Source: Blastocystis sp. Blastoise
Lineage: Eukaryota > Protista > Bigyra: Opalinata
DNA length: 64,000 nt
Assembly: GCA_039096225.1 (NCBI GenBank)
Contig: JBBPEB010000019.1
Location: 356,344 to 420,343 of the forward strand
Direction: 5' to 3'
The notes under the pieces were generated by a model that saw only the letters and a list, made by a program, of their open reading frames with translations, was not told the origin of the DNA and ran no database searches. The translations under genes and the position numbers were made by a program. Positions within the stretch are counted from its first letter, which is position 1. Each line of letters begins with the position of its first letter. Shown piece after piece: positions 448 through 64,000 of the stretch.

Positions 448-11378
<10,931 letters not shown>

Positions 11379-22164: not shown

Positions 22165-22254
<90 letters not shown>

Positions 22255-37587: not shown

Positions 37588-38635
37588 ATGTATTTTTTTG
37601 ATTGTACAATTGCATCATATATTGCTTGGATACTTACTGGACTAGCCATTCCTATATTTTTAATCCTTCTCTTCGTTCCTGCATGGTATGGAAGATATAC
37701 AAATATGTCAGAATCAAAATGTCATATCAACTTAGGTTCTTTAAGTCCAAGATTGTCATGGATTCTTCAAGAATGTCCTTCATTCTTTATTCCTTTATTT
37801 GGTCTAATTTATGGAATAATAGAAAATAGTATTGATATTCATGGTTGTATTATGATCATTATGTTCATGACTCATTATGTAAATAGGTATTTCATCATCT
37901 TTACATTGTTTCATATTTTCATATTTTTTTAATTGTGTATTTCTTTAGATCATTTATTTATCCATTTCGTATCAAAAGTACTCACAGAGTCCCAACCGAA
38001 ATATTTTTGATGGCAGTCACTTTCTGTTTATTAAATGGATATATTCAAGCATCTTATTATATTACTTCATGTGCACCATGGTCAAATACATTGTTTAAAG
38101 ATATATGTTTCCTTCTTGGATTTCTTTTATTCATTATTGGAATGACTATAAATATATATTCTGACAATGAACTTATTTCTTTGAGACAATCTTCTGAAGG
38201 TGAATATTTGATACCTCAAAAAGGATTATTTCAATATATTTCAGGTGCTAATTATTTTGGTGAATGTATCGAATGGTTTGGATATGCTATTGCCTCTTGG
38301 AATCTAGCAGGTAAATATATATATATATTGTTATGTTTATGTTTTTTATCTTTCTGATTATTTCATATTCGAATTGATATTTTTTTTATATAATTCTTTT
38401 TTATTATTATTTATAAATATTATTTATAAATATTATTTATAAATATTATTTATTAAATATTATTTATTAAACATTATTTATTATATATAATACTTTTTCT
38501 ATAGGTTTATCATTTGCTGTATTTACGATAGCTAATATAGGTCCAAGAGCATTAAAACATCATCAATATTATAAAGATCACTTTGGAAACTCATATCCTA
38601 CGGATAGAAAAGCATTAATTCCTTTTATCCTTTAA
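37588..38635 (+). CDS. 3-oxo-5-alpha-steroid 4-dehydrogenase (SRD5A1/DET2 family), 3 exons
   Basis: PAWYGRY, WILQECPSF, HYVNRSFIYP, NIYSDNELISLR, YLIPQKGLFQYISGANYFGECIEWFGYA, GPRALKHHQYY, RKALIPFIL. Confidence 0.93.
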
Positions 38636-38894: not shown

Positions 38895-39200
38895 TTATTC
38901 ACGAACTTCTACATTCATTTGTGCATTCTGTTTGTGTTCATAATCAATAATTATTTGATCAAAGAATTGTTTATGTACCAAAGAATGAAAGAAATCCATT
39001 GAAGATATATATCGGTTGTTCTTATTACGAATATAGAATGGAGTAGATGAAAAAACGATACCAGTCAATCCACACACAACATAAAATGCTTTTATATGAG
39101 CAACAGTCATCAGTTTAGGCACATAGAATATAATAATACCATTTGAATTACTTATAATCTTAAAAATCAGTTTCTATAAGGATATATATTTGTGTTCCAT
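38895..39200 (-). CDS. Small hypothetical single-pass membrane protein; start uncertain (39110 or spliced from 39200)
   Basis: Coding-like ORF with one hydrophobic segment AFYVVCGLTGIVFSSTPFYI. Confidence 0.45.
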
Positions 39201-40144: not shown

Positions 40145-41107
40145 TTTTCATGGGACTAAAAATAAGACAAACTAGAAATTGTTGCTAAATATTTTTAAGA
40201 CTGTTTCAGATTTATAGAATTTCTATGTTCTTTCATAAAATATGATTAGTTTGTTAATGATTTTTAACCAATAAAATAATGAAAATAGTCCAATAGTATT
40301 ATCACGATTTTTCTGGAAAATTATTGCTAACGATAATATATAATTTTTCCAGAATTCTATAGAATATTCTTTAAAAGAGTTATTAATTAAAAAAATAGTT
40401 TTTTTTTAGTTTTAATATACATCAATATAAACATTAGTAAAAACAAACAAAACAATGATTTATGACTAAAATTTATAATAACAACAATTTTTTGTTAAAG
40501 AACTTTACATAACTCATATTTAGTTAACATATAAAAGAAATATTAATCAACTATATAAATAAAAATAAGAATGAATAGAAATAGTAATAGTATATCATAC
40601 AATAATAAATATATATATACAATTAAAGGCACTTCTCATATTATTGTGGAAGAAAAACTGATCTATAAATTATATGAAATAAATAATGTATAGAAATATT
40701 TAATATATATATATATATACATAGAATAGATTCAACTGAATGTAACAGGCAATTAGACAATCAAAAAGAATCTATATAAAATGAATTAATAAAATAAATG
40801 AAAAGATATATACTCAAAATGCTTCATATTTATTAATTGTAATAAATCTATATAAAAATAATGAAAACTAGTATATATATATAATACATACATTTTAAAT
40901 ATATTATTATAATAAATGAATAAGTTTTTAAGGATCTAAGAATTCATGACGTCATAACTAATGTATATTTCATTACTATATAAAGATAATTATAAATAAA
41001 GAAAATATTTTATAGTATAATATAATATACAAAACCTAAAAGAATAATAATAATAAAATATAAAACAATTTATATCTTAAATATATATGAGATTCAACTG
41101 CGTCAAC

Positions 41108-42045
41108 TTATTTTAAATTTTTATAAAATAAAGAAACAATAATAAAATAAATAGCCAATAGGATATACTTGTGAATGACGAAGACTGTGTTCCATAAGTT
41201 TGTCATAAATATTCTGCAATCTTTCGATGACTACGTAATTTGTTTTATACGCATACGTAGTTTTATCAAAAAAATCTGGATTCCTTTTCCATTGCAAAGC
41301 CTATATATGATAATTCATCTAAATTTTTGTGTTAATATAGAATATATAATACATACCAAAAAATCACTTCTTATTTTTTTTTTATCTTCTACTTTATATC
41401 CATCTTTATCTAGTAATAAAAACCCAAAGGAAGATGCAAAGTCTCCATGAGTCTTTTTATCATAAAGAGATTTTTTCACACATCTAATAATATCGTAATC
41501 ACTTAGTGATTCGACATTTTTATATTGACACATATAATCCTTTACTATTTTTAAAATAATATCCAATAATTTATTTTCATCATCAAGAAGTGTTTTACCA
41601 TTATTTTGAATAAACATATTCTTTGCATCTATTAAGTCTCCTTCATTAATAACATAGGGTATGTATTTTAAGCAATTCTATAAATTTTTAATAGAGATTA
41701 TAGTAGTGAAGTCTAATATATAAGAGTATAATATACCTTTATTTGTTTTGTCGAAGCTTTATTAGCTGACACATTTATATTTCTTTTGAGAGCTTCTTTC
41801 CGAAAGAATGTTTCCATGTCATATGTCAAATAATGACATTTTTTAGTTTCTAAAAATGTAATATAATTAATAATTAATATACTTAACATTTCAGGATATA
41901 GTATCGAACGATAAAACTCATGAAAAGCTCCAAACAGTTTCAATTTAAATTTCTTTACTCTTTCAATATCATTTTTTTTTGCAGTATTTCTATAATTCCC
42001 AGTATAAACATTATATAAAATAGTTTTATGTTACTTTTGTTGCAT
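41108..42045 (-). CDS. Orphan multi-exon protein inside the putative CACTG element; 3' end uncertain
   Basis: ATG at 42045 and GT-AG exons join MQQKNTAKKND...KLFGAFHEFYRS..., ETKKCHYLTYD..., NCLKYIPYVINEGD..., ALQWKRNPDFF...; no recognisable motif. Confidence 0.55.
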
Positions 42046-42474
42046 GGTTAACGATAAGTTAAAGATAAAAAAATATATCTTTTTTTATTTATTTTTCTAT
42101 TGTTTGTCTTAAAACAAATATAATAATTTTATTAAAATATATTTTATTTATATTTATGTAATATATTTATTTCTGTAAATCTTATAATTGATGATCTTGT
42201 TGCAAAAATTGGTTTATCAAACAAAAAGAAAATTATACAATTTTGTATTATTAATAATATACTTAATATACAGGATATAGATAAGAACAACGTTAATATG
42301 TTTCTTAGTATTTAAATGAGATATTCAATTAAGAAGATGATAATATTAATAGTATACAAACTATCATTTATAATATTATTTTCATTTGAAAACTATATAA
42401 GTTAAAATAAATTATATAAATAATCAATCTAAATTAGAAATAAAAATGAGAGGAAGAATTACTATAATAAAAGG

Positions 42475-42477
<3 letters not shown>

Positions 42478-42513
<36 letters not shown>
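42478..42513. repeat. (TA)n microsatellite, Helitron target site
   Basis: Pure TA run abutting the CTAG terminus. Confidence 0.9.
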
Positions 42514-42514
<1 letters not shown>

Positions 42515-42520
42515 TAGGGT

Positions 42521-42566
42521 AACGCCGCTGGCGCACCGCCTAACGGCGACGCGCCGCGGCTGCGTT
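42521..42566 (-). terminator. Helitron 3' subterminal hairpin (rolling-circle termination signal)
   Basis: Minus strand AACGCAGCCGCGGCGCGTCGCC-GTTA-GGCGGTGCGCCAGCGGCGTT, 7 nt before the end; repeated at 54603-54648. Confidence 0.9.
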
Positions 42567-42749
42567 GTGCAGTTGGGTTTTAAAATTATTTCTTTAACTT
42601 TATTGAACAAAACAACCTTGTTTATTATAAACATTTAAAAAACAAATAAAAAGTGAAGAAGTAATAGATTAAAAAGAAAAAATAATTAACAAACATAAAA
42701 CAAAAACAAACAAATATAACAAAAGAAGAAAAAAGAAAAAATAAAGCAT

Positions 42750-45700
42750 TTAATTATTTAGAGTAGACCTGAAGACCACGTTCTTAGTAAATATTTCATT
42801 ACTACTACTAATCATCTTACCTTGAGAGACACTATCAACTACCTTAATAAAAAGAGCGTTGAAAGATCGAGCACGACTGAAAGCAACATAGAGTTGACCA
42901 TGAGAGAAGACAGGACGATCTAAGTAAACACCAACTCTTTCAAATGTTTGTCCTTGAGATTTGTTGATAGTCATGGCAAAGGCTAAACGAATAGGAAATT
43001 GTCTTCTGGATATAATAATAGGAAGATCTTCAGGATTTGAATTACAGATGATTCTTGGAATAATAACAGTTTGTTCATCAATAGTAAGAGAAGGAGGAGG
43101 ATTTAAAATAGTAGCAGTAATATTATTTGATCCTAATCGAGTTACTATAAGTCTAGTACCATTACATAATCCTTTAGAAGGATTAAGATTTCTTAAAAGC
43201 ATAATGATACAACCTATTTTTAAATTTAATATATGAGGAGGCATTCCAGAAGGTGTTTGAGAATTGATAAACTCGATAGGATAATTTGATTCTGGATCAT
43301 CTGTTTCAGAATCAAGAATAGAATCAGAAGAGATATAAGGAGTAGTAGTTCCAGAAAGAAGATTATCAACAATGAAATCATTTAAAGTACCAACACAATC
43401 ATTAGTAGAAGCTAATATAACAGAAGAAGCTAATCGTTTGATATCAGAATCAAGAGAAGTATTGATTCGATGTCCAAATACAGTAACACATAAATCATCA
43501 TTCACAATACATTGAGGAGGAATAGGAATATAATCTATATCTAAATGATGACTAATAGTATAATTATTAGAAAGAACACCATCTCCTACTTGTAATAACC
43601 ATTGTCTAAAATCATCTGCTCCTTCTAAAGCTCTCATATTTCTTGATAAATGAATGACATTATTTTTGATAGAATTCCATAAGGAACAAAACTTTATAGA
43701 AGAACTAACAATCTGAGCTTGAGTTCCTTTTCTTATAACTGGTAAACATTGTCTGAAATCTCCTCCTAATACTACTGTTTTACCACCAAAAGGAATATCT
43801 AATTCTGTATTCATTATATCACATAATAATCTATGTACTACCATAAAACAATCACCTTTCATCATAGGAGCTTCATCCCATATTATTAAATCAGCTATTC
43901 TTATTTCTTCTACTTTTCTTCTATCTCTAGCTAAATCTATATTTGAAGTAGAATCAGGATCAACATTCAAAGGAATACCAAATTGTTTATGAGCTGTTCT
44001 ACCACCTGGTAATAAAGTAGAAGCAATTCCTGTTGAAGCTACAGGTAATACATTCTTATTATGTCCACGTAAATAACTTAATAAACTATTATATAAGAAA
44101 GTCTTTCCACTTCCACCTGGACCATCTATAAAGAAACATAACTTATCTTCTATTCTACTACTTTCTATTGAATGAATTACTCTATCAAATGCATTTCTTT
44201 GTTCTTCATTTAATAATTCTATTACTCTATTAGCTTCTTGTAATTCTAATGTAGGATTATAATTATAATCATTATAATGATGTTGTTCTTCTACTTGAGG
44301 TAATCCTAAATCATTATAATTCACTCCTATACTTATCATCATCTCTTTTATATCTTGTAAAGTACGTATTTCATAATCTTGAAGAACACTATTAGTATCA
44401 TCTTCTATAACACTTGATGAATCTAAATCTTGAGCTAAAGGAGTATTTATATAATCTATTTCATTATTATGCATTGAATGTTTATAATCCTCACTAAGAA
44501 ATGATTTAAATCGAATCCAAAACTCTTTCACATTTGTTAATAATGATTCTGAAATATAAGTAATAAATAATTGTCTCAATTGACATGGAGTAGCAAAAAC
44601 AATAGCTTCTGAAAATGAATCAAATACTTCTCTCTCATTATTCAATAATCCTCTTGCTATAGCTGCTTCACTAAAGGTTCTATAAGGTTCATTACTATTC
44701 AATCCTTTTACTATCTTCAAAGAATCAAAGCTATCAGCTCCTTTCGTATTCAATAATAATAATCTCAAAGCATATCGTTCCTTATCTTTTGGATTCACAT
44801 AATACATTCTTCCTAAAGCTTTTATATCTCTCTGACGTCTATTCCAAGTATTTGTATTCGATTTCCATACATAATATTTTGGTATTTCATGATAAGCATA
44901 AATAGGATATTTCTCATCTAATATTTTCAATAATTCTTCGGATATATTATCATCATCTACTTCATAACTATTTATTCTATTTATCTCTTCTAAACGAACT
45001 TGAATCAATTCTCTTTCTTCTTCTACATTATTCATATTACGAATACCATGCTTCTTCTCTATATAATAATAAGTATATATCTTTCTTTGATTCTGAACTT
45101 CTTTCTCTAAATCAAAGTATTTTGTTAATTTAGTACCTTTCTCTAAACTATTCCTTAATGCTTCTACTTCATGTCCTTCTCGAAATAATATATATGGATC
45201 ATCAGGTAAATGAATAGGTAATCTATTAATAGAAACAGAATTATAAGTAATTTCAAAACAATTCAAACGATAAGAAGCTTCAGGAGGAGAAACATATCGA
45301 CAATCTAAATAAGCTTGAGTTTCATCTACTATTCCATTATCATTCACTCTTCTTAATTGAGCTATCACAGAATCATTTCCTTTTAATGCATACTTATATA
45401 TATATTTTGTACTTTGAATATTACAACAGACTTCTACATTAATATGAGCTTGATATTTCAATAATAAATAAGGATTATAAGGAACTACCCAACGATTATC
45501 AATAGTATAAGTATTATGACTACGAATAAGAGTAATAGTTCTATCAGGAATATTTCTTCTTTGATATAAAGGATAAGAATTTAAATGACAATTAGTTTGC
45601 TCTATATATTCTTTTGGAAATCTCTTACTACATTTACCTGTTGATCTATCAATACAAACACAATTCGTATCATAATCAGGACCACATGGACCATGAATCA

Positions 45701-48700
45701 TATGTTTCTTAACTAATTCATAAAGAAGAGGAGTTGATTCTTTATCAGGAATCTCTGCACTTATTATACTATCTACTTCATCTTCTGTTCTATATTTAGA
45801 ATTCGTATCTAAAATAATTAATATATGAGAATGTGGTAAACCTCTCTTTTGGAATTCCACTGAATATAATAAAGCTTCTACAGTACCAAATATATTCTTA
45901 TCCTTTATATCAGAAAGTAATTGTTTCAACTTTAAATGAAACACTCTTGAAACTAAATCTGGAAATTCATTAACAGTATAACCTTCTGGAATATTATTCT
46001 TTATTTCTAACCAATCTGGATTGCAAGTAAATGTTATAAATAAATCAGGTTTACCATATTCTCGAACTACACTCATAGCATCCATATATTTCTGTTGCAA
46101 ATTTCTTGGACTACCAACAAAAGAAGAAGGTAATATAATAGCTTTACCTATTCTATCTATATTTCTATCATTCTCATTTATTTGATCTCCTCTCTCTTCT
46201 AACATATTATTTATATTCTGATAAGTTGAAGCTCTTAACTTATTTTGATTATTTCGTATATAATTAATTCTATTTTGTTCTACTCGAATATAATTATCAG
46301 TAATATATTGTAAAGTTAATTTCTTATATTTTAATAAATAATTATCATAAGGTGGATCTTTCATTTGAAGCATATAATTATAATATTCTAACATAGTAAT
46401 AGTAATTTGATTAGAACGATTCAATGATAATAAATCTGGATACCAACCTTGTCTTCCAGTTGGAAACATAACTGGATAAACCATACAATCTATATAAGAA
46501 TTAGTATTCTTCATTACTATATATTGACCTGAAGTATAACGATTCTGTTCATTATTACTATTAGTAGCTACTATTTCCATACCACTTCTAGGAAAACAAC
46601 AATAACTTCTTTCTGGCATTACTCCTCCTTCTCTATATTGATATATTACTGCTACTTCATCTACTTGAGGAGTATTATATCTTCTTATATCAGGTACTTC
46701 TCTTCTTTGTTTCTTAAACTCTATTAATAAATTAATATTATTTCTATTCATTTGACTATTCTCTTCTAATACTTCATCTACTCTTTCTCGAAGTGAATTA
46801 TATATTTGAGCTAATGGATGATATTCTCTTATTGTACTATCTAATATCTCTAAAATATTTGGTTTTAAATCACAAAAATATCGATTCATACTTCTCATAT
46901 GAGTAGCTTCATCTCCATCTATCATATAATATTGATTGAATACAGGATGTCTTGTAGGATCATTCACATCAAAATCTAAAGCACTCTTAAAAGTATGATA
47001 TATATTACCTCCACATTTAAATAGTAAAGGTCCAGAAGAATTTCTTAAATCATCATCAGAAGTATTATTTCCAGCTAAAGAAGCTAAAGCAACAGAATTA
47101 TTATATCGAATAATATTATTAATAAATTCTCTTGAATCTGGATTATCTCTTTGTAATAAAGAACGAATAGTATTAGGAAGATCAGGAAGCTCAGGAAGAA
47201 CTACTTTACCACTACCACAGCAAGTATAAAACTTATCATTCATTCCTTTCTCTAATTCAAAATGTTTAGCATGACAATATTCACAATGAACATTAAAATC
47301 ACCTAAATAATTAGCTTTATAAGTATTCAATGCTTCATTTAATACGAAATCACCATGAGAATCTATATAAAATAATATAAAATAAATATTAAATATATAT
47401 AAATACTTCTTTGAATAGAAGCAATACAATTATGTAATCCAGGATATAATAATCTTTGTTGATTATCTATAAAAATAATTTGTTATTTAATTATTCATAA
47501 AGAATTATAAAAAATAAATAGCATACAAATATCTAAAGCTCTTCTTCTTCCTCTATTAATAATAGGATGAATAATTATATCTTCTTCAACTATAAAAAAG
47601 TATTAAATAAATATATTTAAATAATAAAAAACATACTATTATCTGTTATAGGTCTTCTAATAGTTCTTACAACTGGTATTTCGTCATTATTTTGAGTATT
47701 ACTATTAATATTAGGAAAAGGATCAATATAATCAGAATCAGAATCATTATCAGAAAAACTACTACTACTACTACTACTACTATCACTTGAACTACTACTA
47801 CTACTACTATTAGGTATTGTTGTTATAATTTCTGATTCATTATCATTATTTAAATTAATATGAGGAATATTTGTTAGAATACTTAAAGGAGGAAGAATAG
47901 GACTTAAATCAGGAATAGTTAAATAACTATTCATAATGGAATTAATAGATCTATTATTTCTATGTATTATTGTTTCATTATTATTAGTATTAGTGTTATT
48001 TCTTGAATTATTTGTATTATCATTAATGATTGTAGAATTATTATTGTTAGATATATTTACATCAGTTGGAATAGTAGTAACAACAGGTAAAGAGTGTGAA
48101 GAAGTATTAATAGAATCATTATTATTATTAGAAACAGAAGTATTTTTTTCTGTAGGTTGTATAATAGTAGTTGATATAGGAATAGATTGATTATTATTAT
48201 TAATTTGACTTTGAACAATAGATATGTTATTAATTGATTGATTAACTGGATTCATTTGATTGAATAGGTTTGAACCATTATTTAATATAGAATTATTATT
48301 ATTTATTTGTGAATAACGATTATCGATATCAATATCAATATTGTTATTTGAATTATTGTTTTGAATGTTTTGTAAAGGAATATTATTTTGAAAATTAAAA
48401 GTCGAAAACAAAGCTAAAGGTTTTGAGTTAAAACCAAATGATTTAGATAAATCATTATTATTTATTTTATCCTTATTGGAACCTATATATATTAATTATT
48501 AGATATTAAATATATTATGTTTAAGTTTAGAATAAAGTTTAGTTGTGTAGTATATAAATTAACTTTCATTGTTATAGTTGTTGAAGTATTTATTAATTAA
48601 TATAAAGTATAACCTTTATTAATATAATATAATACATAGATATAGTATGATAATATATATATTAATATAAAGTATAACATTTATTAATATAATAATACAT

Positions 48701-51148
48701 ACATAAGTATAGTATGATATATTAATTAATATAAAGTATAACCTTCATCAATATAATATGATACATAAGTATAGTATGATATATTAATTAATATAAAGTA
48801 TAACCTTTATTAATATAATATAAGTCATAGATATAGTATGATATATTTATTAATATAAAGTATATAACTCTTATTAATATAATATAATACATAGATATAC
48901 TATGATATATTTATTAATATAAAGTATAACCTTTATTAATATAATATAATACATAAGTATAGTATGATATTATATATATTAATATAAAGTATATAACCTT
49001 TATTAATATAATAATACATAGAATATACTATGATATATTAATTAATATAAAGTATAACATTTATTAATATAATAATACATAGATATACTATGATATATTT
49101 ATTAATATAAAGTATATAACCTTTATTAATATAATAATACATAGATATACTATGATATATTTATTAATATAAAGTATATAACCTTTATTAATATAATAAT
49201 ACATACATATAGTATGATATATTAAATAATATAAAGTAAAAACTTTATTAATTAATAATTATCTTCAATACTATAATGTAATGAAAGATAATATTATAAT
49301 TAATGAAAACTAATATTAAATAAGTATAGGTAATTAATATTGTATAATTTATTAAACAATCTATATGATTCAACCTCATAGAGGACATCTATAGCTATTG
49401 TGCTTTGTTACAACATTCTATAAACATATAGCTAACTACCAGTTAATATCATATACAATGTGAGTAAGTGAAGAATCTTAACACTTAGATATCTCATCAT
49501 TGATAGTATTACATCGGTTAGACTATATAGAGTTAGAAGCGAACAATAGTCAGCAATAGTATGAGTCATATAGGTAATCAATAGTTGTATTAATTAAATT
49601 AAATACAAATATTAAAATACTCAACACTATTTAATATTAAGTAATTCAAAAATTATCTTAATATCCGACACCTTCCCGTTAATCGATACGATTAAAGTAA
49701 AATTAAAATAAAAAAAAAATAACAAAACAAAAATGAAAAAAGAAAGGATTCTATTAAATATTTAAATACTAAGTAGCTAAAGCTAAGCTTAGTAAATAAA
49801 TATATAAATAGATAATAAAAAAGAAAGCAGACAACAGAAAGCTATTATCTGTGAAAGAAAAAAAAATAATAAAACAAAAGAAAAAGAAACTAAAATAATA
49901 AATAATACTTACCCACAACTTTATTTGAACCTATATAAGTATAGAATATAATATAAGTATAAATATACATTGAATAATTGAAGAATTGTTGACACCATCA
50001 ACGACTGAAGAATTATTAACACCATCACCTATATATATATATACAATAGTATAAGTATAAATAAATAAATAATATTATATATATATATATATACCTTTAT
50101 ATATATTAGTAGTAACTATATCAAGACCAACAACAGAGTCACACGATCCCAAATTAAAAGACACACCTATATAGAATCATAAAATAGAATAAACATAGAT
50201 ACATATATATATATATATATATATATACCTTCTGAAGAAGGAATAGAAGAATGACCATGTACTAACTGAGTTGAAGGACCTATATAAAAACAAATAAGAA
50301 AGAATTAAAAGAATAATAAAAAATATATATATATGATATATCTATATACCTTTAGCATTAGAAGGATGATCACCATCAGATACAGTACCATGAACAGAAG
50401 ACACTATCAGAACAGAAGGACCTATATATATTTATAAAATAAAAGTAAATCAAAAAGAAGAAAAAGAAAATATATTATATATACCTTCTTTATGATTAAG
50501 ATCAGCACCAACATTCATAGCAACAGAAGAACCTATAATAACATATAAATAGGAAATAAAAGAAATAATTAAAAATAAATAAATAAATAAATGATTACAT
50601 ACCTTGAAGACCATGAGAAGAGTTAGCATCACCATCAGTAGCATCAGCAACAACATCATCATGAGTATAAGAACCTATAGATAAATAAAAATAAAAAAAA
50701 AATAAAATAAATGATTGACAACATACCTTCAAGACCATTAGTGGAGTGTATATCATCATCAATAGCTCCAGCAACAGAGTCCACAACAACAGAAGAACCT
50801 ATAGATAAATAAAAATATAAAAATAAAAACAAATGATTGACAACATACCTTCAAGACCACTTGAAAACATTATACCATCATCAGTAAAGGACACCAAGGA
50901 CAGAGAAGAGTCTAAGATAATATAAAATAATAAAACAAAAAGAAATGTATAAATATATACCTTCAAGACCATATTGATAAGCACCATCACCATCAATGAC
51001 ATCCATACTTGCATCCTGTTGAGTAGAAGAACCTATATATGAATAATAAAAAAAAATAAATACAATACATACTGGACCGTCTTTGAGAAACGTATTTTTT
51101 TTGATTCAAGGACCTCCGCCTTGATGACATTCTGCCTTTTCTAGGCAT
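42750..51148 (-). CDS. Helitron RepHel transposase (Zn finger, HUH-Y2 Rep, Pif1-family helicase); proposed 15 exons, about 2085 aa
   Basis: CEYCHAKHF...CCGSG; PDLFITFTCNPDW, EFQKRGLPHSH, KYIYKY; GPGGSGKTF, IIWDEAPM, GGDFRQ, TINKSQGQT, HGQLYVAFSR. Last exon 47362-42750 is secure; linkage of the 51148-49913 exons is inferred from splice phase. Confidence 0.9.
48595..49250. repeat. Minisatellite, about 11 copies of a 60-66 bp unit, inside the Helitron
   Basis: AATATAAAGTATAACCTTTATTAATATAAT...ATACATAGATAT..TATGAT recurring about every 62 bp. Confidence 0.9.
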
Positions 51149-51339
51149 CTTATTTAATAATTTAATAAAAATAAGTATTTTTATGTAGAAAACAAAAACA
51201 TATTCATATTTGAACTTTTGTAAAATAGGGACAATATTTAAAATATGCATATTTAAAAATTAATAGGAATCATAAATAACCTCGAATTTTTATTATTATC
51301 TTATGCTAAGCTGATAATAGGGACATTTTTTATTAAAAA

Positions 51340-52110
51340 CATTTTGGGTACCCAAAAACTATAGTTTTTTACATTTTTTAAATATTTGTTTGTATTGATT
51401 GTCTGGGTATGTTTTATTAATTAATTTGATGTTATTTAGTTATTATTTTTATATTTATTTGTATATATTAATTTATTTATTTATAATAATACACTTTTTT
51501 ATAGGATTCTCTTGTATTTGTCTTGGTTGTGGTGGTGAGTGGTTCTTAAAGTGGTCCTGGTTGTGTGAAATGGGTTACTTATTATCAGGTATATAAATAT
51601 ATTATTTATTTCTTAACATCTGTTTATTTTTTACTAATTACTTTTTGTTATTATTTAATTTTATTATCTATATTATTTATTTTGTCTTTTTATATCATCT
51701 ATTAAATTGTTTTTAATTATTTTTATTCTATAGGAAAGAAAATGTTGTTGATGTGTTGTGGTCTTCGTTTTTTCATGTCGTTCTTCTTAGTCTGTGGTTT
51801 CAGATTATTCTATTAGGTATATATTTATATTTTATTTATTGTTTTCATTTTTATTATTTATTATTTATGTTTTTTATTTATTTATTTATTTTTATTTATT
51901 TATTTATTATATTTATTTATTTATTTATTATATTTATTTATTTATTTATTATATTTATTATATTTATATATATTTATTTATTATATTTATTTATTTATTT
52001 ATTATATTTATTTATTTATTATATTTATTTATTTATTTATTTATTTATGTTTTTTATTTATTTATTATATTTATTATATTTATTATATTTATTATATTTA
52101 TTTATTTATT

Positions 52111-52141
<31 letters not shown>

Positions 52142-52527
52142 TTTTATGTTATCTTTTTATATTTTTTCTATTGTATATAGGTTTAATAGTCTTCTTGTTC
52201 CTTTTTCTTCTTTCTTCCTTCTTTCTACTTCATTTTACTTCTTCCTTATCCTTCCTACTACCTTCTTCCTCATTCTTCATTCTTCATTCTTCATTCTTCA
52301 TTCTTCCTTCCTACTTCCTACTTCCTCATCCGTCATTCTTCCTTCTTCTTCTTCTTCTTCCTTCTTCTTCCTACTTCCTCATCCTTCTTTCTTCATCCTA
52401 CTTCTTCCTTCTTCCTTCTTCTTCCTTCATCCTTCTTCCTACTTCTTCCTTCTTCCTTCATCCTTCATCCTTCCTTCTTCTTTCTTCCTACTTCCTACTT
52501 CCACATTCTTCCTACTTCCTTCATTCC

Positions 52528-52530
<3 letters not shown>
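51340..52530 (+). other. Putative divergent spliced transcript inside the Helitron (non-coding or short peptide); limits approximate
   Basis: Donor at 51407, exons 51505-51588 and 51734-51816, acceptor near 52180; exons are G-richer than the flanking T-rich introns. Confidence 0.5.
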
Positions 52531-52565
<35 letters not shown>

Positions 52566-52939
52566 ATTATTATTATTACTCTTTAAACTCCCTTTATGCT
52601 CTGGAAGGAGAGAAGCAATCATTATAGATTGTTTTCAGGTTCAATTCCTGACATGAAGTCTTATTTTTCTTTTTTTAAATATTTTATTTATATATTATTA
52701 TATATATATATTCTCTTTTTTAAATTTATTTTAATCCAGTTTAATTTATACTTTTCAATTTTGACCTTATATATATATATATCTAACTTTTTATAGTTTT
52801 TTTAGACTTACTCTTCTCAACAACAGTCACAATGAGAACAAATCCATTTATACTTAAACAGCCAAGTCATCTTAAAACTGATTATATCAATCAAAATACA
52901 TGTGTTAAACTTGTTTTATTGATTTAAACTCAATTTTAA

Positions 52940-54030
52940 TAATTAAAAGTAAACAAACCAAACACACATGTTGACTTTAAAACTTTAAACTCAGTGTTAA
53001 ATGGTTAGTTTTAAAGAGTAGACACAAAACATTGATTTATACTAAAAGGAATGAAAACAATCAACTCTTGATACAACTTTACCATTTGATAAAACACTCA
53101 TCCACAATATTTTCCAAAGTTCTTTTAGTAAAGTGTTTATATAGACATATAATGTATAAAATGAAAGTCAACTTCTTGAATCTCTTATTTTAGGACAGTC
53201 TTTAAAACATTTTGACAAATAGACAACCTTTAACTTGCTATTTAAAGCTAATATTTTAAGAGTAGACTTGATTTAAACCTATATACACAACTGTCATCAT
53301 CATAACACTTTTAAAGACACTTTACCATTTGCTCATACACTTTGATCAAAACATTTTCGTCCCTTCTTTTAATATAATATAGATCATACACTCTAGTTTA
53401 ATGAATAAAAGCTCTTATTTTGAATCTCGTCCTCTAAGTCACTCATTTTTACATTTTTCAAAATTTAAGACCCTTAGAGTTGATATTTTGACTCAATTTT
53501 TCTACAATGCACGAAATTCACGATTTTATATAAACTGAAGTGAAAATAAATTTTAAATAATAGTCACAACACCTCACACATCCACTCTCTAAAAATTATT
53601 TTCTTTGTACTTTTGATATGTTGTAGAGCTACTACAGCTGTATACTAATTAATATCTCTAAATTTTTTATTCACAGTTTAAGACTATGTTTTACACATTC
53701 TTTTAAATTTGACAACCTTAAACTATTTATTTAAAGCTATTATTCATAGAATAGACTTGATATAAGATTCTATACACATATATAAACCATTTTACTTTTT
53801 AAGACACATTTTGTCATTTGGTCATACACTTTGACCTTCATAATTTTGACTTTCCTTTTAACATAGAATAGAGTATTATCTCTAGTTTACTAAATAAAAG
53901 TCATTATATTGAATCTCTCACTCTAAGACCACTTAATTCACACTTTTCAAAATTGTGACACTAAAACTCATTATTTTAAGACTTTGTTTTAGATATAGTA
54001 GTTTGATGACCTATTGATTACAATACTACA
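52940..54030. repeat. Degenerate tandem repeat, about 243-bp unit, about 4.5 copies, in the Helitron 5' region
   Basis: ACTTTACCATTT near 53076 and 53319; TGAATCTC near 53177, 53421 and 53910; TCTAGTTTA near 53392 and 53881. Confidence 0.75.
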
Positions 54031-54595
54031 ATATTAGTTGATTATAAGAAGATCAAAGAAAATATCGATCACTCAAAAATCGTCCTCAGGAGCTCAAAAT
54101 TGGTACACCTAGGTTTTTCGACCTCCTGAATCAGAATATCATGTCAAAATAAGAATCTAAATTTGACCGTTAAGGCCTCACGTGTTCAATATGAAAAAGT
54201 ATTAAAAAGTAGATAAATATAAAGAATAAACACGGATAACGTATATTGTGGGATTGAGAAAAAATCAAGTTTACCCCATGTTTATTTTCCAATTGTCTGG
54301 TCAACAATTTTTATCGGGATGATCCCAAAGAGCCAATCAAAAACGACTCAAAAATCATGTTTTCTGTTTTTTTATTAATAACTTTTTAATTATTAATAAT
54401 ATCGCTTAACCAAATATACGGTGCACAACTACACGTTATATCGTATTGAACTGTGTTTCAGCCAAAAGTTAACTCCCCGTAAGTTTAGAGGAGTTGCGGC
54501 GACAAACTATAGTATACATTAGCCAATCAAATGGTTTTTCCAAAAACTGACCAATGGGAATTTTTTTGCCTATTCTCATATATATAGTAATGATA

Positions 54596-55614
54596 CTAGG
54601 GTAACGCCGCTGGCGCACCGCCTAACGGCGACGCGCCGCGGCTGCGTTGTGCAGTTGGGTTTTAAAATTATTTCTTTAACTTTATTGAACAAAACAACCT
54701 TGTTTATTATAAACATTTAAAAAACAAATAAAAAGTGAAGAAGTAATAGATTAAAAAGAAAAAAATAATTAACAAACATAAAACAAAAACAAACAAATAT
54801 AACAAAAGAAGAAAAAAGAAAAAAATAAAGCATTTAATTATTTAGAGTAGACCTGAAGACCACGTTCTTAGTAAATATTTCATTACTACTACTAATCATC
54901 TTACCTTGAGAGACACTATCAACTACCTTAATAAAAAGAGCGTTGAAAGATCGAGCACGACTGAAAGCAACATAGAGTTGACCATGAGAGAAGACAGGAC
55001 GATCTAAGTAAACACCAACTCTTTCAAATGTTTGTCCTTGAGATTTGTTGATAGTCATGGCAAAGGCTAAACGAATAGGAAATTGTCTTCTGGATATAAT
55101 AATAGGAAGATCTTCAGGATTTGAATTACAGATGATTCTTGGAATAATAACAGTTTGTTCATCAATAGTAAGAGAAGGAGGAGGATTTAAAATAGTAGCA
55201 GTAATATTATTTGATCCTAATCGAGTTACTATAAGTCTAGTACCATTACATAATCCTTTAGAAGGATTAAGATTTCTTAAAAGCATAATGATACAACCTA
55301 TTTTTAAATTTAATATATGAGGAGGCATTCCAGAAGGTGTTTGAGAATTGATAAACTCGATAGGATAATTTGATTCTGGATCATCTGTTTCAGAATCAAG
55401 AATAGAATCAGAAGAGATATAAGGAGTAGTAGTTCCAGAAAGAAGATTATCAACAATGAAATCATTTAAAGTACCAACACAATCATTAGTAGAAGCTAAT
55501 ATAACAGAAGAAGCTAATCGTTTGATATCAGAATCAAGAGAAGTATTGATTCGATGTCCAAATACAGTAACACATAAATCATCATTCACAATACATTGAG
55601 GAGGAATAGGAATA
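54596..55614 (-). mobile_element. Helitron copy 2, 3' 1.0-kb portion, interrupted by copy 3
   Basis: Near-identical to 42514-43530, including hairpin, CTAG end and helicase C-terminus. Confidence 0.95.
54834..55614 (-). pseudogene. RepHel helicase C-terminal fragment of copy 2
   Basis: Translation matches the C-terminal ~250 aa of copy 1; cut at GGAATA^TC. Confidence 0.9.
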
Positions 55615-57642
55615 TCATTACTATATATATGAGAATAGGCAAAAAAATTCCCATTGGTCAGTTTTTGGAAAAACCATTTGATTGGCTAATGTATACTATA
55701 GTTTGTCGCCGCAACTCCTCTAAACTTACGGGGAGTTAACTTTTGGCTGAAACACAGTTCAATACGATATAACGTGTAGTTGTGCACCGTATATTTGGTT
55801 AAGCGATATTATTAATAATTAAAAAGTTATTAATAAAAAAACAGAAAACATGATTTTTGAGTCGTTTTTGATTGGCTCTTTGGGATCATCCCGATAAAAA
55901 TTGTTGACCAGACAATTGGAAAATAAACATGGGGTAAACTTGATTTTTTCTCAATCCCACAATATACGTTATCCGTGTTTATTCTTTATATTTATCTACT
56001 TTTTAATACTTTTTCATATTGAACACGTGAGGCCTTAACGGTCAAATTTAGATTCTTATTTTGACATGATATTCTGATTCAGGAGGTCGAAAAACCTAGG
56101 TGTACCAATTTTGAGCTCCTGAGGACGATTTTTGAGTGATCGATATTTTCTTTGATCTTCTTATAATCAACTAATATTGTAGTATTGTAATCAATAGGTC
56201 ATCAAACTACTATATCTAAAACAAAGTCTTAAAATAATGAGTTTTAGTGTCACAATTTTGAAAAGTGTGAATTAAGTGGTCTTAGAGTGAGAGATTCAAT
56301 ATAATGACTTTTATTTAGTAAACTAGAGATAATACTCTATTCTATGTTAAAAGGAAAGTCAAAATTATGAAGGTCAAAGTGTATGACCAAATGACAAAAT
56401 GTGTCTTAAAAAGTAAAATGGTTTATATATGTGTATAGAATCTTATATCAAGTCTATTCTATGAATAATAGCTTTAAATAAATAGTTTAAGGTTGTCAAA
56501 TTTAAAAGAATGTGTAAAACATAGTCTTAAACTGTGAATAAAAAATTTAGAGATATTAATTAGTATACAGCTGTAGTAGCTCTACAACATATCAAAAGTA
56601 CAAAGAAAATAATTTTTAGAGAGTGGATGTGTGAGGTGTTGTGACTATTATTTAAAATTTATTTTCACTTCAGTTTATATAAAATCGTGAATTTCGTGCA
56701 TTGTAGAAAAATTGAGTCAAAATATCAACTCTAAGGGTCTTAAATTTTGAAAAATGTAAAAATGAGTGACTTAGAGGACGAGATTCAAAATAAGAGCTTT
56801 TATTCATTAAACTAGAGTGTATGATCTATATTATATTAAAAGAAGGGACGAAAATGTTTTGATCAAAGTGTATGAGCAAATGGTAAAGTGTCTTTAAAAG
56901 TGTTATGATGATGACAGTTGTGTATATAGGTTTAAATCAAGTCTACTCTTAAAATATTAGCTTTAAATAGCAAGTTAAAGGTTGTCTATTTGTCAAAATG
57001 TTTTAAAGACTGTCCTAAAATAAGAGATTCAAGAAGTTGACTTTCATTTTATACATTATATGTCTATATAAACACTTTACTAAAAGAACTTTGGAAAATA
57101 TTGTGGATGAGTGTTTTATCAAATGGTAAAGTTGTATCAAGAGTTGATTGTTTTCATTCCTTTTAGTATAAATCAATGTTTTGTGTCTACTCTTTAAAAC
57201 TAACCATTTAACACTGAGTTTAAAGTTTTAAAGTCAACATGTGTGTTTGGTTTGTTTACTTTTAATTATTAAAATTGAGTTTAAATCAATAAAACAAGTT
57301 TAACACATGTATTTTGATTGATATAATCAGTTTTAAGATGACTTGGCTGTTTAAGTATAAATGGATTTGTTCTCATTGTGACTGTTGTTGAGAAGAGTAA
57401 GTCTAAAAAAACTATAAAAAGTTAGATATATATATATATAAGGTCAAAATTGAAAAGTATAAATTAAACTGGATTAAAATAAATTTAAAAAAGAGAATAT
57501 ATATATATAATAATATATAAATAAAATATTTAAAAAAAGAAAAATAAGACTTCATGTCAGGAATTGAACCTGAAAACAATCTATAATGATTGCTTCTCTC
57601 CTTCCAGAGCATAAAGGGAGTTTAAAGAGTAATAATAATAAT

Positions 57643-57680
<38 letters not shown>

Positions 57681-58064
57681 GGAATGAAGGAAGTAGGAAG
57701 AATGTGGAAGTAGGAAGTAGGAAGAAAGAAGAAGGAAGGATGAAGGATGAAGGAAGAAGGAAGAAGTAGGAAGAAGGATGAAGGAAGAAGAAGGAAGAAG
57801 GAAGAAGTAGGATGAAGAAAGAAGGATGAGGAAGTAGGAAGAAGAAGGAAGAAGAAGGAAGAAGGAAGAATGACGGATGAGGAAGTAGGAAGTAGGAAGG
57901 AAGAATGAAGAATGAAGAATGAAGAATGAAGAATGAGGAAGAAGGTAGTAGGAAGGATAAGGAAGAAGTAAAATGAAGTAGAAAGAAGGAAGAAAGAAGA
58001 AAAAGGAACAAGAAGACTATTAAACCTATATACAATAGAAAAAATATAAAAAGATAACATAAAA

Positions 58065-58095
<31 letters not shown>

Positions 58096-58299
58096 AATAA
58101 ATAAATAAATATAATAAATATAATAAATATAATAAATATAATAAATAAATAAAAAACATAAATAAATAAATAAATAAATAAATATAATAAATAAATAAAT
58201 ATAATAAATAAATAAATAAATATAATAAATAAATATATATAAATATAATAAATATAATAAATAAATAAATAAATATAATAAATAAATAAATAAATATAA

Positions 58300-58330
<31 letters not shown>

Positions 58331-59869
58331 AAAACATAAATAATAAATAATAAAAATGAAAACAATAAATAAAATATAAATATATACCTAATAGAATAAT
58401 CTGAAACCACAGACTAAGAAGAACGACATGAAAAAACGAAGACCACAACACATCAACAACATTTTCTTTCCTATAGAATAAAAATAATTAAAAACAATTT
58501 AATAGATGATATAAAAAGACAAAATAAATAATATAGATAATAAAATTAAATAATAACAAAAAGTAATTAGTAAAAAATAAACAGATGTTAAGAAATAAAT
58601 AATATATTTATATACCTGATAATAAGTAACCCATTTCACACAACCAGGACCACTTTAAGAACCACTCACCACCACAACCAAGACAAATACAAGAGAATCC
58701 TATAAAAAAGTGTATTATTATAAATAAATAAATTAATATATACAAATAAATATAAAAATAATAACTAAATAACATCAAATTAATTAATAAAACATACCCA
58801 GACAATCAATACAAACAAATATTTAAAAAATGTAAAAAACTATAGTTTTTGGGTACCCAAAATGTTTTTAATAAAAAATGTCCCTATTATCAGCTTAGCA
58901 TAAGATAATAATAAAAATTCGAGGTTATTTATGATTCCTATTAATTTTTAAATATGCATATTTTAAATATTGTCCCTATTTTACAAAAGTTCAAATATGA
59001 ATATGTTTTTGTTTTCTACATAAAAATACTTATTTTTATTAAATTATTAAATAAGATGCCTAGAAAAGGCAGAATGTCATCAAGGCGGAGGTCCTTGAAT
59101 CAAAAAAAAATACGTTTCTCAAAGACGGTCCAGTATGTATTGTATTTATTTTTTTTTTTATTATTCATATATAGGTTCTTCTACTCAACAGGATGCAAGT
59201 ATGGATGTCATTGATGGTGATGGTGCTTATCAATATGGTCTTGAAGGTATATATTTATACATTTCTTTTTGTTTTATTATTTTATATTATCTTAGACTCT
59301 TCTCTGTCCTTGGTGTCCTTTACTGATGATGGTATAATGTTTTCAAGTGGTCTTGAAGGTATGTTGTCAATCATTTGTTTTTATTTTTATATTTTTATTT
59401 ATCTATAGGTTCTTCTGTTGTTGTGGACTCTGTTGCTGGAGCTATTGATGATGATATACACTCCACTAATGGTCTTGAAGGTATGTTGTCAATCATTTAT
59501 TTTATTTTTTTTTTATTTTTATTTATCTATAGGTTCTTATACTCATGATGATGTTGTTGCTGATGCTACTGATGGTGATGCTAACTCTTCTCATGGTCTT
59601 CAAGGTATGTAATCATTTATTTATTTATTTATTTTTAATTATTTCTTTTATTTCCTATTTATATGTTATTATAGGTTCTTCTGTTGCTATGAATGTTGGT
59701 GCTGATCTTAATCATAAAGAAGGTATATATAATATATTTTCTTTTTTCTTCTTTTTGATTTACTTTTATTTTATAAATATATATAGGTCCTTCTGTTCTG
59801 ATAGTGTCTTCTGTTCATGGTACTGTATCTGATGGTGATCATCCTTCTAATGCTAAAGGTATATAGATA
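55615..59869 (+). mobile_element. Helitron copy 3, 5' 4255 bp, inverted relative to copies 1 and 2, interrupted by copy 4
   Basis: Starts TCATTACTATATATATG; reverse complement of about 50339-54593. Confidence 0.95.
59056..59858 (+). pseudogene. Exons 1-7 of the micro-exon array in copy 3, with a +1 A in exon 1
   Basis: A9 at 59102-59110 versus A8 in copy 1 shifts the frame; interrupted in intron 7. Confidence 0.7.
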
Positions 59870-61897
59870 TCATTACTATATATATGAGAATAGGCAAAAA
59901 AATTCCCATTGGTCAGTTTTTGGAAAAACCATTTGATTGGCTAATGTATACTATAGTTTGTCGCCGCAACTCCTCTAAACTTACGGGGAGTTAACTTTTG
60001 AGTGAAACACAGTTCAATACGATATAACGTGTAGTTGTGCACCGTATATTTGGTTAAGCGATATTATTAATAATTAAAAAGTTATTAATAAAAAAACAGA
60101 AAACATGATTTTTGAGTCGTTTTTGATTGGCTCTTTGGGGTGACCCCGATAAAAATTGTTGACCAGACAATTGGAAAATAAACATGGGGTAAACTTGATT
60201 TTTTCTCAATCCCACAATATACGTTATCCGTGTTTATTCTTTATATTTATCTATTTTTTAATACTTTTTCATATTGAACACGTGAGGCCTTAACGGTCAA
60301 ATTTAGATTCTTATTTTGACATGATATTCTGATTCAGGAGGTCGAAAAACCTAGGTGTACCAATTTTGAGTTCCTGAGGACGATTTTTGAGTGATCGATA
60401 TTTTCTTCGATCTTCTTATAATGGACTAATATTGTATAATGGTAATCAATAGGTCCTCAAACTACTATAGTTAAAACAAGGTCTTAAAATAATGAGTTTG
60501 AGTGTCACAATTTTGAAAAATGTGAATTAAGTGGTCTTAGAGGATAAGATTCAATATAATGACTTTTGTTTAGTAAACTAGAGATAATACTCTATTCTAT
60601 GTTAAAAGGAGAGTCAAAATTATGATGGTCAAAGTGTATCACCAAATGACAAAATGTGTCTTAAAAAGTAAAATGGTTTATATATGTGTATAGAATCTTA
60701 TATCAAGTCTATTCTATGAATAATAGCTTTAAATAAATAGTTTAAGGTTGTCAAATTTAAAAGAATGTGTAAAACATAGTCTTAAACTGTGAATAAAAAA
60801 TTTAGAGATATTAATTAGTATACAGCTGTAGTAGCTCTACAACATATCAAAAGTACAAAGAAAATAATTTTTAGAGAGTGGATGTGTGAGGTGTTGTGAC
60901 TATTATTTAAAATTTATTTTCACTTCAGTTTATATAAAATCGTGAATTTCGTGCATTGTAGAAAAATTGAGTCAAAATATCAACTCTAAGGGTCTTAAAT
61001 TTTGAAAAATGTAAAAATGAGTGACTTAGAGGACGAGATTCAAAATAAGAGCTTTTATTCATTAAACTAGAGTGTATGATCTATATTATATTAAAAGAAG
61101 GGACGAAAATGTTTTGATCAAAGTGTATGAGCAAATGGTAAAGTGTCTTTAAAAGTGTTATGATGATGACAGTTGTGTATATAGGTTTAAATCAAGTCTA
61201 CTCTTAAAATATTAGCTTTAAATAGCAAGTTAAAGGTTGTCTATTTGTCAAAATGTTTTAAAGACTGTCCTAAAATAAGAGATTCAAGAAGTTGACTTTC
61301 ATTTTATACATTATATGTCTATATAAACACTTTACTAAAAGAACTTTGGAAAATATTGTGGATGAGTGTTTTATCAAATGGTAAAGTTGTATCAAGAGTT
61401 GATTGTTTTCATTCCTTTTAGTATAAATCAATGTTTTGTGTCTACTCTTTAAAACTAACCATTTAACACTGAGTTTAAAGTTTTAAAGTCAACATGTGTG
61501 TTTGGTTTGTTTACTTTTAATTATTAAAATTGAGTTTAAATCAATAAAACAAGTTTAACACATGTATTTTGATTGATATAATCAGTTTTAAGATGACTTG
61601 GCTGTTTAAGTATAAATGGATTTGTTCTCATTGTGACTGTTGTTGAGAAGAGTAAGTCTAAAAAAACTATAAAAAGTTAGATATATATATATATAAGGTC
61701 AAAATTGAAAAGTATAAATTAAACTGGATTAAAATAAATTTAAAAAAGAGAATATATATATATAATAATATATAAATAAAATATTTAAAAAAAGAAAAAT
61801 AAGACTTCATGTCAGGAATTGAACCTGAAAACAATCTATAATGATTGCTTCTCTCCTTCCAGAGCATAAAGGGAGTTTAAAGAGTAATAATAATAAT

Positions 61898-61935
<38 letters not shown>

Positions 61936-62319
61936 GGAATGAAGGAAGTAGGAAGAATGTGGAAGTAGGAAGTAGGAAGAAAGAAGAAGGAAGGATGAAG
62001 GATGAAGGAAGAAGGAAGAAGTAGGAAGAAGGATGAAGGAAGAAGAAGGAAGAAGGAAGAAGTAGGATGAAGAAAGAAGGATGAGGAAGTAGGAAGAAGA
62101 AGGAAGAAGAAGGAAGAAGGAAGAATGACGGATGAGGAAGTAGGAAGTAGGAAGGAAGAATGAAGAATGAAGAATGAAGAATGAAGAATGAGGAAGAAGG
62201 TAGTAGGAAGGATAAGGAAGAAGTAAAATGAAGTAGAAAGAAGGAAGAAAGAAGAAAAAGGAACAAGAAGACTATTAAACCTATATACAATAGAAAAAAT
62301 ATAAAAAGATAACATAAAA

Positions 62320-62350
<31 letters not shown>

Positions 62351-62554
62351 AATAAATAAATAAATATAATAAATATAATAAATATAATAAATATAATAAA
62401 TAAATAAAAAACATAAATAAATAAATAAATAAATAAATATAATAAATAAATAAATATAATAAATAAATAAATAAATATAATAAATAAATATATATAAATA
62501 TAATAAATATAATAAATAAATAAATAAATATAATAAATAAATAAATAAATATAA

Positions 62555-62585
<31 letters not shown>

Positions 62586-62972
62586 AAAACATAAATAATA
62601 AATAATAAAAATGAAAACAATAAATAAAATATAAATATATACCTAATAGAATAATCTGAAACCACAGACTAAGAAGAACGACATGAAAAAACGAAGACCA
62701 CAACACATCAACAACATTTTCTTTCCTATAGAATAAAAATAATTAAAAACAATTTAATAGATGATATAAAAAGACAAAAATAAATAATATAGATAATAAA
62801 ATTAAATAATAACAAAAAGTAATTAGTAAAAATAAACAGATGTTAAGAAATAAATAATATATTTATATACCTGATAATAAGTAACCCATTTCACACAACC
62901 AGGACCACTTTAAGAACCACTCACCACCACAACCAAGACAAATACAAGAGAATCCTATAAAAAAGTGTATTA
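59870..62972 (+). mobile_element. Helitron copy 4, 5' 3103 bp, interrupted by copy 5
   Basis: Starts TCATTACTATATATATG; direct repeat of copy 3 at offset 4255. Confidence 0.95.
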
Positions 62973-64000
62973 TCATTACTATATATATGAGAATAGGCAA
63001 AAAAAATTCCCATTGGTCAGTTTTTGGAGAATGCATTTGATTGGCTACTATATACTATAGTTTGTCGCCGCAACTCCTCTAAACTTACGGGAAGTTAACT
63101 TTTGGTTGAAACACAGTTCAATAGGATATAACGTGTAGTTGTGCACCGTATATTTGGTTAAGCGATATTATTTATAATTAAAAAGATATTAATAAAAGAA
63201 CAGAAAACATGATTTTTGAGTCGTTTTTGATTGGCTCTTTGGGGTGACCCCGATAAAAATTGTTGACCAGACAATTGGAAAATAAACATGGGGTAAACTT
63301 GATTTTTTCTCAATCCCACAATATACGTTATCCGTGTTTATTCTTTATATTTATCTATTTTTTAATACTTTTTCATATTGAACACGTGAGGCCTTAACGG
63401 TCAAATTTAGATTGTCAATTTGACATCATATTCTGATTCAGGAGGTCAGAAAACCTAGGTGTAGCGATTTTGAGCTCCTGAAGACGATTTTTGAGTGATC
63501 GATATTTTCTTCGATCTTCTTATAATGGACTAATATTACAGCATTGTAATCAATAGGTCATCAAACTACTATAGTTAAAACAGAGTCTTAAAATAATGAG
63601 TTTAAGTATGACAATTTTGAAAAATGTGAATTAAGTGGTCTTAGAGGACAAGATTCAATACAATGACTTTTATTTAGTAAACTTGAGATATTACTCTATT
63701 CTATGTTAAAAGGAGAGTCAAAATTATGAAGATCAAAGTGTTTGACCAAATGACAAAATGTGTCTTAAATAGTAAAAGGGTTTCTATATGTGTTTAGAAT
63801 CATGTATTAAGTCTATTCTATGAATAATAGTTTTAAATAAATAGTTTAAGGTTGTCAAATTCAAAAGAATGTATAAAACATAGTCTTAAACTATGAATAA
63901 AAAAATTTAGAGATATTAATTAGTGTACAGCTGTAGTAGCTCTACAACATATCAAAAGTACAAAGAAAATAATTTTTAAAGAGTGGATGTGTAAAGGGTT
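62973..64000 (+). mobile_element. Helitron copy 5, 5' end, diverged variant, runs off the window
   Basis: Starts TCATTACTATATATATG; many substitutions relative to copies 1 and 3. Confidence 0.93.

Follow-up and report, generated by a model that had tools for sequence, protein, structure and literature searches.

A stack of five Helitrons in Blastocystis sp. Blastoise probably contains a three-headed chimeric element that arrived in a single insertion

How does a stack of Helitrons, each cut open by the next, come about at a single locus: by repeated insertion in place or by the arrival of an element that was composed elsewhere? This question is raised by the end of contig JBBPEB010000019.1 (referred to as C1) of the protist Blastocystis sp. 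Blastoise (assembly GCA_039096225.1), of which a stretch of 64,000 nucleotides (the window; positions 356,344 to 420,343 of the forward strand) was analyzed, window base 64000 being the last base of the contig. Direct reading and self-comparison confirmed five stacked Helitrons of one family in the window, of which copies 1 and 2 are located on the minus strand and copies 3 to 5 on the plus strand. An earlier note on this DNA had interpreted them as a nested stack, in which each of the last three copies was inserted into the preceding one. We consider it highly probable that the insert in copy 2 is a single chimeric Helitron of 13,758 bp, which arrived within a head-to-tail pair of elements in one event, and that it is not a nest assembled at this place.

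The insertion points can be read to the base. Copy 3 interrupts copy 2 at 55614/55615 (GGAATA|TCATTACT), copy 4 interrupts the copy 3 sequence at 59869/59870 (TAGATA|TCATTACT) and copy 5 interrupts copy 4 at 62972/62973 (GTATTA|TCATTACT). For each of these junctions, all of which had been quoted by the earlier note, the corresponding unfilled site is present in copy 1, i.e., GGAATA^TAATC at 43530/43531, TAGATA^TATC at 50339/50338 and GTATTA^TTAT at 51487/51486, and each lies at A^T. As the note had also stated, the terminus is common to all four 5' ends: TCATTACT starts at 55615, 59870 and 62973 on the plus strand and at 54593 on the minus strand, and each of the three plus-strand units begins with TCATTACTATATATATGAGAATAGG. 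The same regularity was observed over about 217 kb of genome loci that were read, in which 25/25 5' ends show TCATTACT... and are preceded by A, and 12/12 3' ends show ...ACCCTAG and are followed by T, conforming to the rule of a 5' TC and a 3' CTRR; the regularity of these A/T flanks is not due to chance. Insertion proceeds without target-site duplication, which can be seen in the three filled/unfilled pairs of the window and on a second contig, C10, where both sides of the copy 2 insertion fit. This bears out the view of a young Helitron family that inserts at A^T without duplication. Terminal inverted repeats are absent, the ends TCATTACTATATAT... and ...GGCGTTACCCTAG not being complementary.

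C1 stops 1,028 bp into copy 5, and the continuation of the stack is present on C10, the reversed sequence of which differs from window 31988-64000 by 3 mismatches and 18 small gaps over 32 kb and extends beyond it. The order on C10 is the remainder of copy 2 (C10:1-1760, equal to copy 1 positions 9304-11063 at 100%), copy 5 ending in ...GACCCTAG, the copy 4 segment, the copy 3 segment, the tail of copy 2, TA and copy 1. The CTAG of copy 5 is directly followed by TAATCTAT, i.e., by copy 2 resuming, and the junction CTAG|TAATCTATATC, in full ...GCGGCGTGACCCTAG|TAATCTATATCTAAATG, lies exactly at the base where copy 2 was interrupted. In a search of the assembly this 3' junction occurs once and the junction from copy 2 to copy 3 occurs on C1 and C10 only. 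The 13,758-bp insert in copy 2 therefore combines three 5' termini with a single 3' terminus, which is that of the innermost element and stands directly before the resumed target, an arrangement that was read on C10 only.

If copies 3, 4 and 5 had each been inserted at this locus, their 3' halves should follow in reverse order beyond the end of the contig, first copy 4, then copy 3, then copy 2, as the earlier note had predicted. Such a locally built nest would agree with the clean A^T footprint and the unfilled site in copy 1 at every 5' junction, and with C1 ending before the 3' halves could be read. On C10, however, which has all four junctions in common with the window at the near identity given above, copy 2 follows directly after copy 5, and copies 3 and 4 never resume.

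A second argument comes from C6, a contig of 115 kb. The block of copies 3, 4 and 5 is found there at C6:73397-50629 (22,769 bp) with 0 mismatches over 8.4 kb compared to the window, in an unrelated flank that reads TTAA|TC ... CTAG|TATT, the target being TTAA^TATT. The junctions from copy 3 to copy 4 and from copy 4 to copy 5 are present in three places of the assembly only, namely on C1, C10 and C6. On C6, copy 4 resumes with TTATAAAT after the CTAG of copy 5 and continues to its own CTAG; this second CTAG is followed by TATTATATATATG and not by a resumed copy 3. The flanks of the C6 block are directly adjacent to each other at C3:780137/780138, C3:367866/367867, C4:1615453/1615454 and C32:653372/653371, giving four unfilled paralogs of the site with neither duplication nor loss of bases, as judged from the adjacent coordinates. 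The predicted succession of 3' ends was thus not found: copy 2 alone resumes on C10, and copy 4 but not copy 3 on C6. For the locally built nest, independent nesting would have to strike the same two bases twice, and we regard this explanation as most improbable. What holds of the nested stack is that every junction marks the insertion of one family member into another; what does not hold is its stepwise construction at this site, copies 3 and 4 being, from their arrangement on C10 and C6, the 5' segments of a chimera.

The C6 insertion hit a target (flanks L008:8398-8797 and L006:5229-5628) that is itself a repeated element: at least four of its paralogs are unfilled, and a palindromic motif of roughly 70 bp (tctttcacgggttt...aaacccgtgaaaga) is present on both sides. 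When the 400-bp upstream flank was used as a query, its first 257 bases, which are the farthest from the Helitron end, matched at least 12 further loci at 91-97%.

The same chimera is thus present at two loci. Because the same internal junctions recur at both, each time bounded by TC and CTAG at A^T with an unfilled site, the block would have moved as a transposon, and because the junctions between copies 3, 4 and 5 are the same at the unrelated C6 site, it would have been made elsewhere and moved. The version on C1 and C10 is without the remainder of copy 4 that C6 has and would therefore be the derivative; C6 appears to retain a donor-type structure that is still present in the assembly. We infer the direction of transfer, the order of events and a 'first terminator' rule, which together may have proceeded as follows. 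Copies 2 and 1 would have formed a head-to-tail autonomous pair on the minus strand, seated in a (TA)n tract. Elsewhere in the genome, members of the family would have inserted into one another in the same orientation. The RepHel transposase would then have nicked the outermost 5' TC end, run in the 5'->3' direction and stopped at the first 3' hairpin-CTAG that it met, i.e., that of the innermost element. The resulting chimera, in which the initial 4,255 bp of one element are joined to the initial 3,103 bp of another and to a whole non-autonomous third element of 6.4 kb, would finally have inserted in the helicase-coding part of copy 2 at GGAATA^TAATC. The C6 block, consisting of the copy 3 segment and a whole copy 4, might be explained likewise from an earlier nest, and recombinational loss in a local nest is equally possible for it.

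Several points weigh against this explanation. The 3' boundary is taken from C10, where it lies only 1.76 kb from the contig start, and C10 need not be the same molecule as C1 but may represent an allele or a recent duplicate. Moreover, the structure is taken from assembled contigs. The assembly does not contain the original nest, in which a complete copy 3 would harbour copy 4 and CTAG would be followed by TATCATAT; a search of the assembly for CTAG followed by TATCATATATATAT gave a single match, which has 2 mismatches and represents a different site. Furthermore, the C6 structure by itself could also arise by a local nest and homologous recombination between the identical 7.8-kb 3' parts.

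This last point leads to a variant of the nest, in which copies 3 to 5 were inserted locally and recombination between the element 3' regions later eliminated the 3' portions of copies 4 and 3. Identical direct repeats of several kilobases are good substrates for recombination, and for the C6 block this route gives the same product as a chimeric transposition. For the window and C10, however, the crossover would have to be confined to the last 7 bases (ACCCTAG) common to both 3' ends, because the G/T difference at position -8 is of the copy-5 type, and the 3' region of copy 5 has no other similarity to the autonomous element. Moreover, deletion does not account for finding one and the same block at two loci. 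Deletion is thus unlikely as the origin of the window structure, and this route as a whole is given very little weight.

A similar weighing applies to the assembly itself, in which repeats at contig ends might have been mis-joined or one locus might have been assembled several times. The stack lies where C1 ends and C10 begins, these two are twins over at least 42 kb, and all of the evidence comes from assembled contigs. But all junctions coincide precisely with a TC or CTAG terminus and with A^T, and the two halves of an interrupted element always match up to the base, which is unlike an overlap mis-join; in addition, C6 shows the two internal junctions in different surroundings and with four empty-site paralogs. 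An artefact is hardly to be expected in view of this precision, and the single arrival of a chimeric element remains our preferred explanation.

The relation of the two contigs deserves a separate description. For at least 42 kb, the terminal part of C1 (window 22000-64000) is nearly identical to the initial part of C10 (C10:7138-49042), and this block includes host-like genes, as an example a steroid 5-alpha-reductase-like open reading frame (ORF) at 37935-38357. As window 4000-6000 is unique in the genome and window 22000-24000 has its twin on C10, the possibility that C10 simply repeats the entire C1 end as redundant sequence was rejected. Because the contigs share at least 42 kb but differ further left, they would represent alleles, a recent segmental duplication or a partial redundancy. 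In the window, two segments (31866-31906, 41 bp, and 31948-31987, 40 bp) read GT...AG on the minus strand and are exactly absent from C10 near 39135-39175, and around them only 2 substitutions separate C1 from C10 in 11.4 kb; this looks like a very recent precise loss of neighbouring introns or like an allelic presence/absence.

The three segments of the chimera differ in their relation to copy 1. The first (copy 3; 55615..59869, plus strand) comprises the first 4,255 bp of an element and shows 0 substitutions compared to copy 1; in the self-comparison of the window, the inverted match of 50325-54595 to 55613-59885 amounts to 99.7%. The second (copy 4; 59870..62972, plus strand) comprises the first 3,103 bp of a family member and shows 27 substitutions, all of which are in its first 771 bp (59870-60640) and none beyond. 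Of these 27, 14 match the copy-5 subfamily, which suggests that the 5' end of copy 4 may be recombinant or converted. The remainder of copy 4 on C6 has 1 mismatch to copy 1 over 9.0 kb. The third segment (copy 5; 62973..64000, plus strand) is the start of a 6.4-kb non-autonomous element that is cut by the contig end and is present as a whole at C10:8163-1761 and C6:66042-59604. Copy 5 belongs to a diverged non-autonomous subfamily, which has its 5' 4-5 kb in common with copy 1, at 94% identity in the first kb and about 82-87% further in; no match to the RepHel-coding part was detectable when the subfamily element was compared to copy 1, and its 3' region shows no similarity to the autonomous element other than the final bases. 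Judged by these substitution counts, the copies are very young and the Helitron family is likely to be mobile today. For copies 3 to 5, a tandem multimer formed by rolling-circle read-through was also considered and rejected: the units are unequal 5' segments joined at internal A^T sites, not 3'-to-5' joints.

Copy 1 is a complete autonomous Helitron of 12,080 bp (42514..54593, minus strand), with its 5' TCATTACT at 54593 and its 3' CTAG at 42514, and the corresponding element on C10 is 99.94% identical. It was described in the earlier note as sitting in a TA target, and this agrees with a (TA)n tract (42478..42513, strandless), which flanks its 3' end, served as its target and reads directly into CTAGGG at 42514. 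The element contains an open RepHel frame of 1559 aa (42750..47429, minus strand; taken from the ORF list and supported by Pfam and by an alignment to Helraiser), which matches Helitron_like_N (PF14214) at 2.2e-56 and PIF1 (PF05970) at 2.1e-64. It aligns nearly end to end, over residues 42-1557, with Helraiser 7LCC (E 1.3e-296), and its HUH motif GLPHSHIL is aligned with that protein in a conserved motif region. Directly upstream, an open frame of 264 aa from the ORF list (47617..48411, minus strand), for which no family match was found, is possibly an upstream exon of the RepHel gene. The 5' 6 kb (48412..54593, minus strand) is the part that copy 1 has in common with copies 3, 4 and 5, and contains 62-bp tandem repeats, low-complexity DNA and repeated exon-intron modules (repeat families D2, D4, D9, D12 and D15). 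The 62-bp repeats, the low-complexity arrays and the modules, which are 122-124 bp in length, are found at 48498-49321, 50554-51040 and 51783-52529. The modules resemble small exons that end in ...GGTCTTGAAG and are followed by gtatgt introns, and their regions in copy 1 have mirrored counterparts at 57664-59653 and 61919-62655.

Copies 1 and 2 are arranged head-to-tail and are separated by a 2-bp TA spacer (54594..54595, strandless), so that the sequence reads AGTAATGA-TA-CTAGGG, with the same layout on C10. In the window, copy 2 is represented by its 3'-terminal 1,019 bp (54596..55614, minus strand), which contain the C-terminus of the helicase, the hairpin and CTAG, are cut off by the chimera and are 99.3% identical to copy 1 positions 11046-12080. 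To the left of copy 1, DNA of window 41000-42500 is repeated at 99-100% in five places (C1, C10, C14, C18 and C23) and probably represents another mobile element. No tRNA-like elements were found by ARAGORN in window 28-64 kb.

At its 3' end, copy 1 carries a G+C-rich hairpin (42524..42560, minus strand) with a 16-bp stem and a GTTA loop, which is located 10 nt from CTAG. Its last 65 nt are G+C-rich compared to the genome with about 24% GC, and the hairpin folds with -21.1 kcal/mol (z -2.85). The hairpin of the copy-5 subfamily shows the same fold with other stem bases and the pairing kept (-19 kcal/mol, z -5.7); both folded hairpins have a 16-bp stem and end 10 nt before the element end. Altogether three stem variants were seen, i.e., GGCGCGTCGCC/GGCGGTGCGCC (window 42524-42560), GGTCCGGTGCC/GGCCCCGGACC (L001:1771-1807) and a third with ...GGCACTGGACC (C24:255318 and C6:41854/78560). 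The first two were folded and keep the fold despite their base differences, and the GTTA loop and the final ACCCTAG are constant in all three. With a RepHel protein, TC/CTRR ends, a hairpin, insertion at A^T and no terminal inverted repeats, the family is a canonical Helitron (Helitron1).

Why do so many copies lie together? The earlier note had stressed that the preceding 40 kb is without copies, and indeed no family copy is present in window 1-42496. Genome-wide, the clustering was determined for 67 distinct 5' ends outside C10, which were taken from the coordinates of three genome searches; this sample is not random, as it consists of best BLAST hits and of contigs picked for their likeness to the window locus. 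Another 5' end lies within 5 kb for 43% of the 67, compared to 2% expected at random placement, and within 30 kb for 67%, compared to 11%; C6 alone contributes 13 of the 67. The family is strongly clustered genome-wide and the excess is real.

Active self-targeting or local re-insertion, as proposed in the earlier note, would explain this if the transposase preferred DNA of its own family or nearby sites and thereby built islands. Next to the excess of neighbours within 5 kb, such a preference is consistent with the finding that about half of the 5' ends on the loci read lie inside or beside family DNA. Moreover, insertions adjacent to ends recur: 2 bp past a 3' end in the window, past (TAA)8 on C24 and, on C6, 9 bases inside a 5' terminus. 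However, the targets are TA tracts, which are supplied by the elements' own 5' ends and introns, and insertions into genes are probably purged by selection in a compact genome. Furthermore, moved chimeras and the C1/C10 twin inflate the counts, multiplying 5' ends without new nesting, and the sample of ends is not a random one. The clustering part of the proposal stands, but a preference for TA tracts or a survival bias could produce it as well as targeting, and we consider self-targeting possible though doubtful. Still more tentative, and in our estimation rather improbable, is the wider idea that the family is active now and prefers re-insertion into or beside its own copies, at TA tracts of the element ends and of its introns, with self-nesting and 'first terminator' transposition as the main source of new non-autonomous, multi-headed elements. 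If this were true, rounds of self-nesting would build Helitron islands that end many contigs and may mark chromosome domains.

The end-adjacent arrangements on C24 and C6 are as follows. At C24:255318-255343, a 3' CTAG, the (TAA)8 tract and a 5' TC end succeed each other in the same orientation. At C6:39795, an inverted element is inserted 9 bases into the 5' terminus of another, and at C6:21871, CTAG is followed by T and then by an inverted 5' terminus.

The route from nested to chimeric elements was until now mostly inferred from old or short remnants, and the presence of product, donor-type structure and unfilled targets together at about zero divergence would provide a clean natural test of the rule that transposition starts at the outer 5' end and stops at the first 3' end. 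In practical terms, the family breaks the assembly at its clusters, and counting 5' ends overestimates the number of insertion events. A literature text search revealed no paper describing Helitrons in Blastocystis.

Among the known systems, the autonomous element resembles Helraiser/Helibat of bats (PDB 7LCC), with which it shares a RepHel protein of about 1,500 aa with HUH Rep and PIF1 helicase, TC/CTAG ends, a hairpin situated about 10 nt from the 3' end and A/T insertion without duplication. It differs in its length of 12 kb, in the 6 kb of repeats and small exons that form its 5' region ahead of RepHel, and in its AT-rich protist host (about 24% GC). The mechanism proposed for the chimera was already described, and nothing conceptually new is required (PMC5148889; PMC3288121; PMC4224331). 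For FoHeli of Fusarium oxysporum, Chellapan et al. reported multiple 5' termini and proposed that transposition of a nest starts with a nick at its leftmost 5' terminus and ends at the 3' terminus encountered first (PMC5148889, Fig. 7), and Dong et al. derived the multi-termini Helitrons of maize from nested ones (PMC3288121). Of 100 internal 3' ends sampled in the maize cases described, 99 have no intact CTAG, and the pathway proposed there passes through a hypothesized intermediate (PMC3288121). In the compound HelibatN539, host DNA lying between two adjacent copies was captured (PMC4224331). In contrast to these, the window chimera contains no captured host DNA and its internal 5' termini are not visibly degraded. 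FoHeli likewise has several 5' termini in the same orientation, one 3' terminus and the same explanation, but its duplicated 5' pieces are typically <200 bp and its elements are non-canonical (PMC5148889), whereas the window chimera is composed of 4.3- and 3.1-kb pieces in three levels, with a donor-type structure and unfilled sites at 0 substitutions. What makes the present case noteworthy is its size, its arrangement in three levels and the fact that a donor-type structure and unfilled sites have survived with zero divergence.

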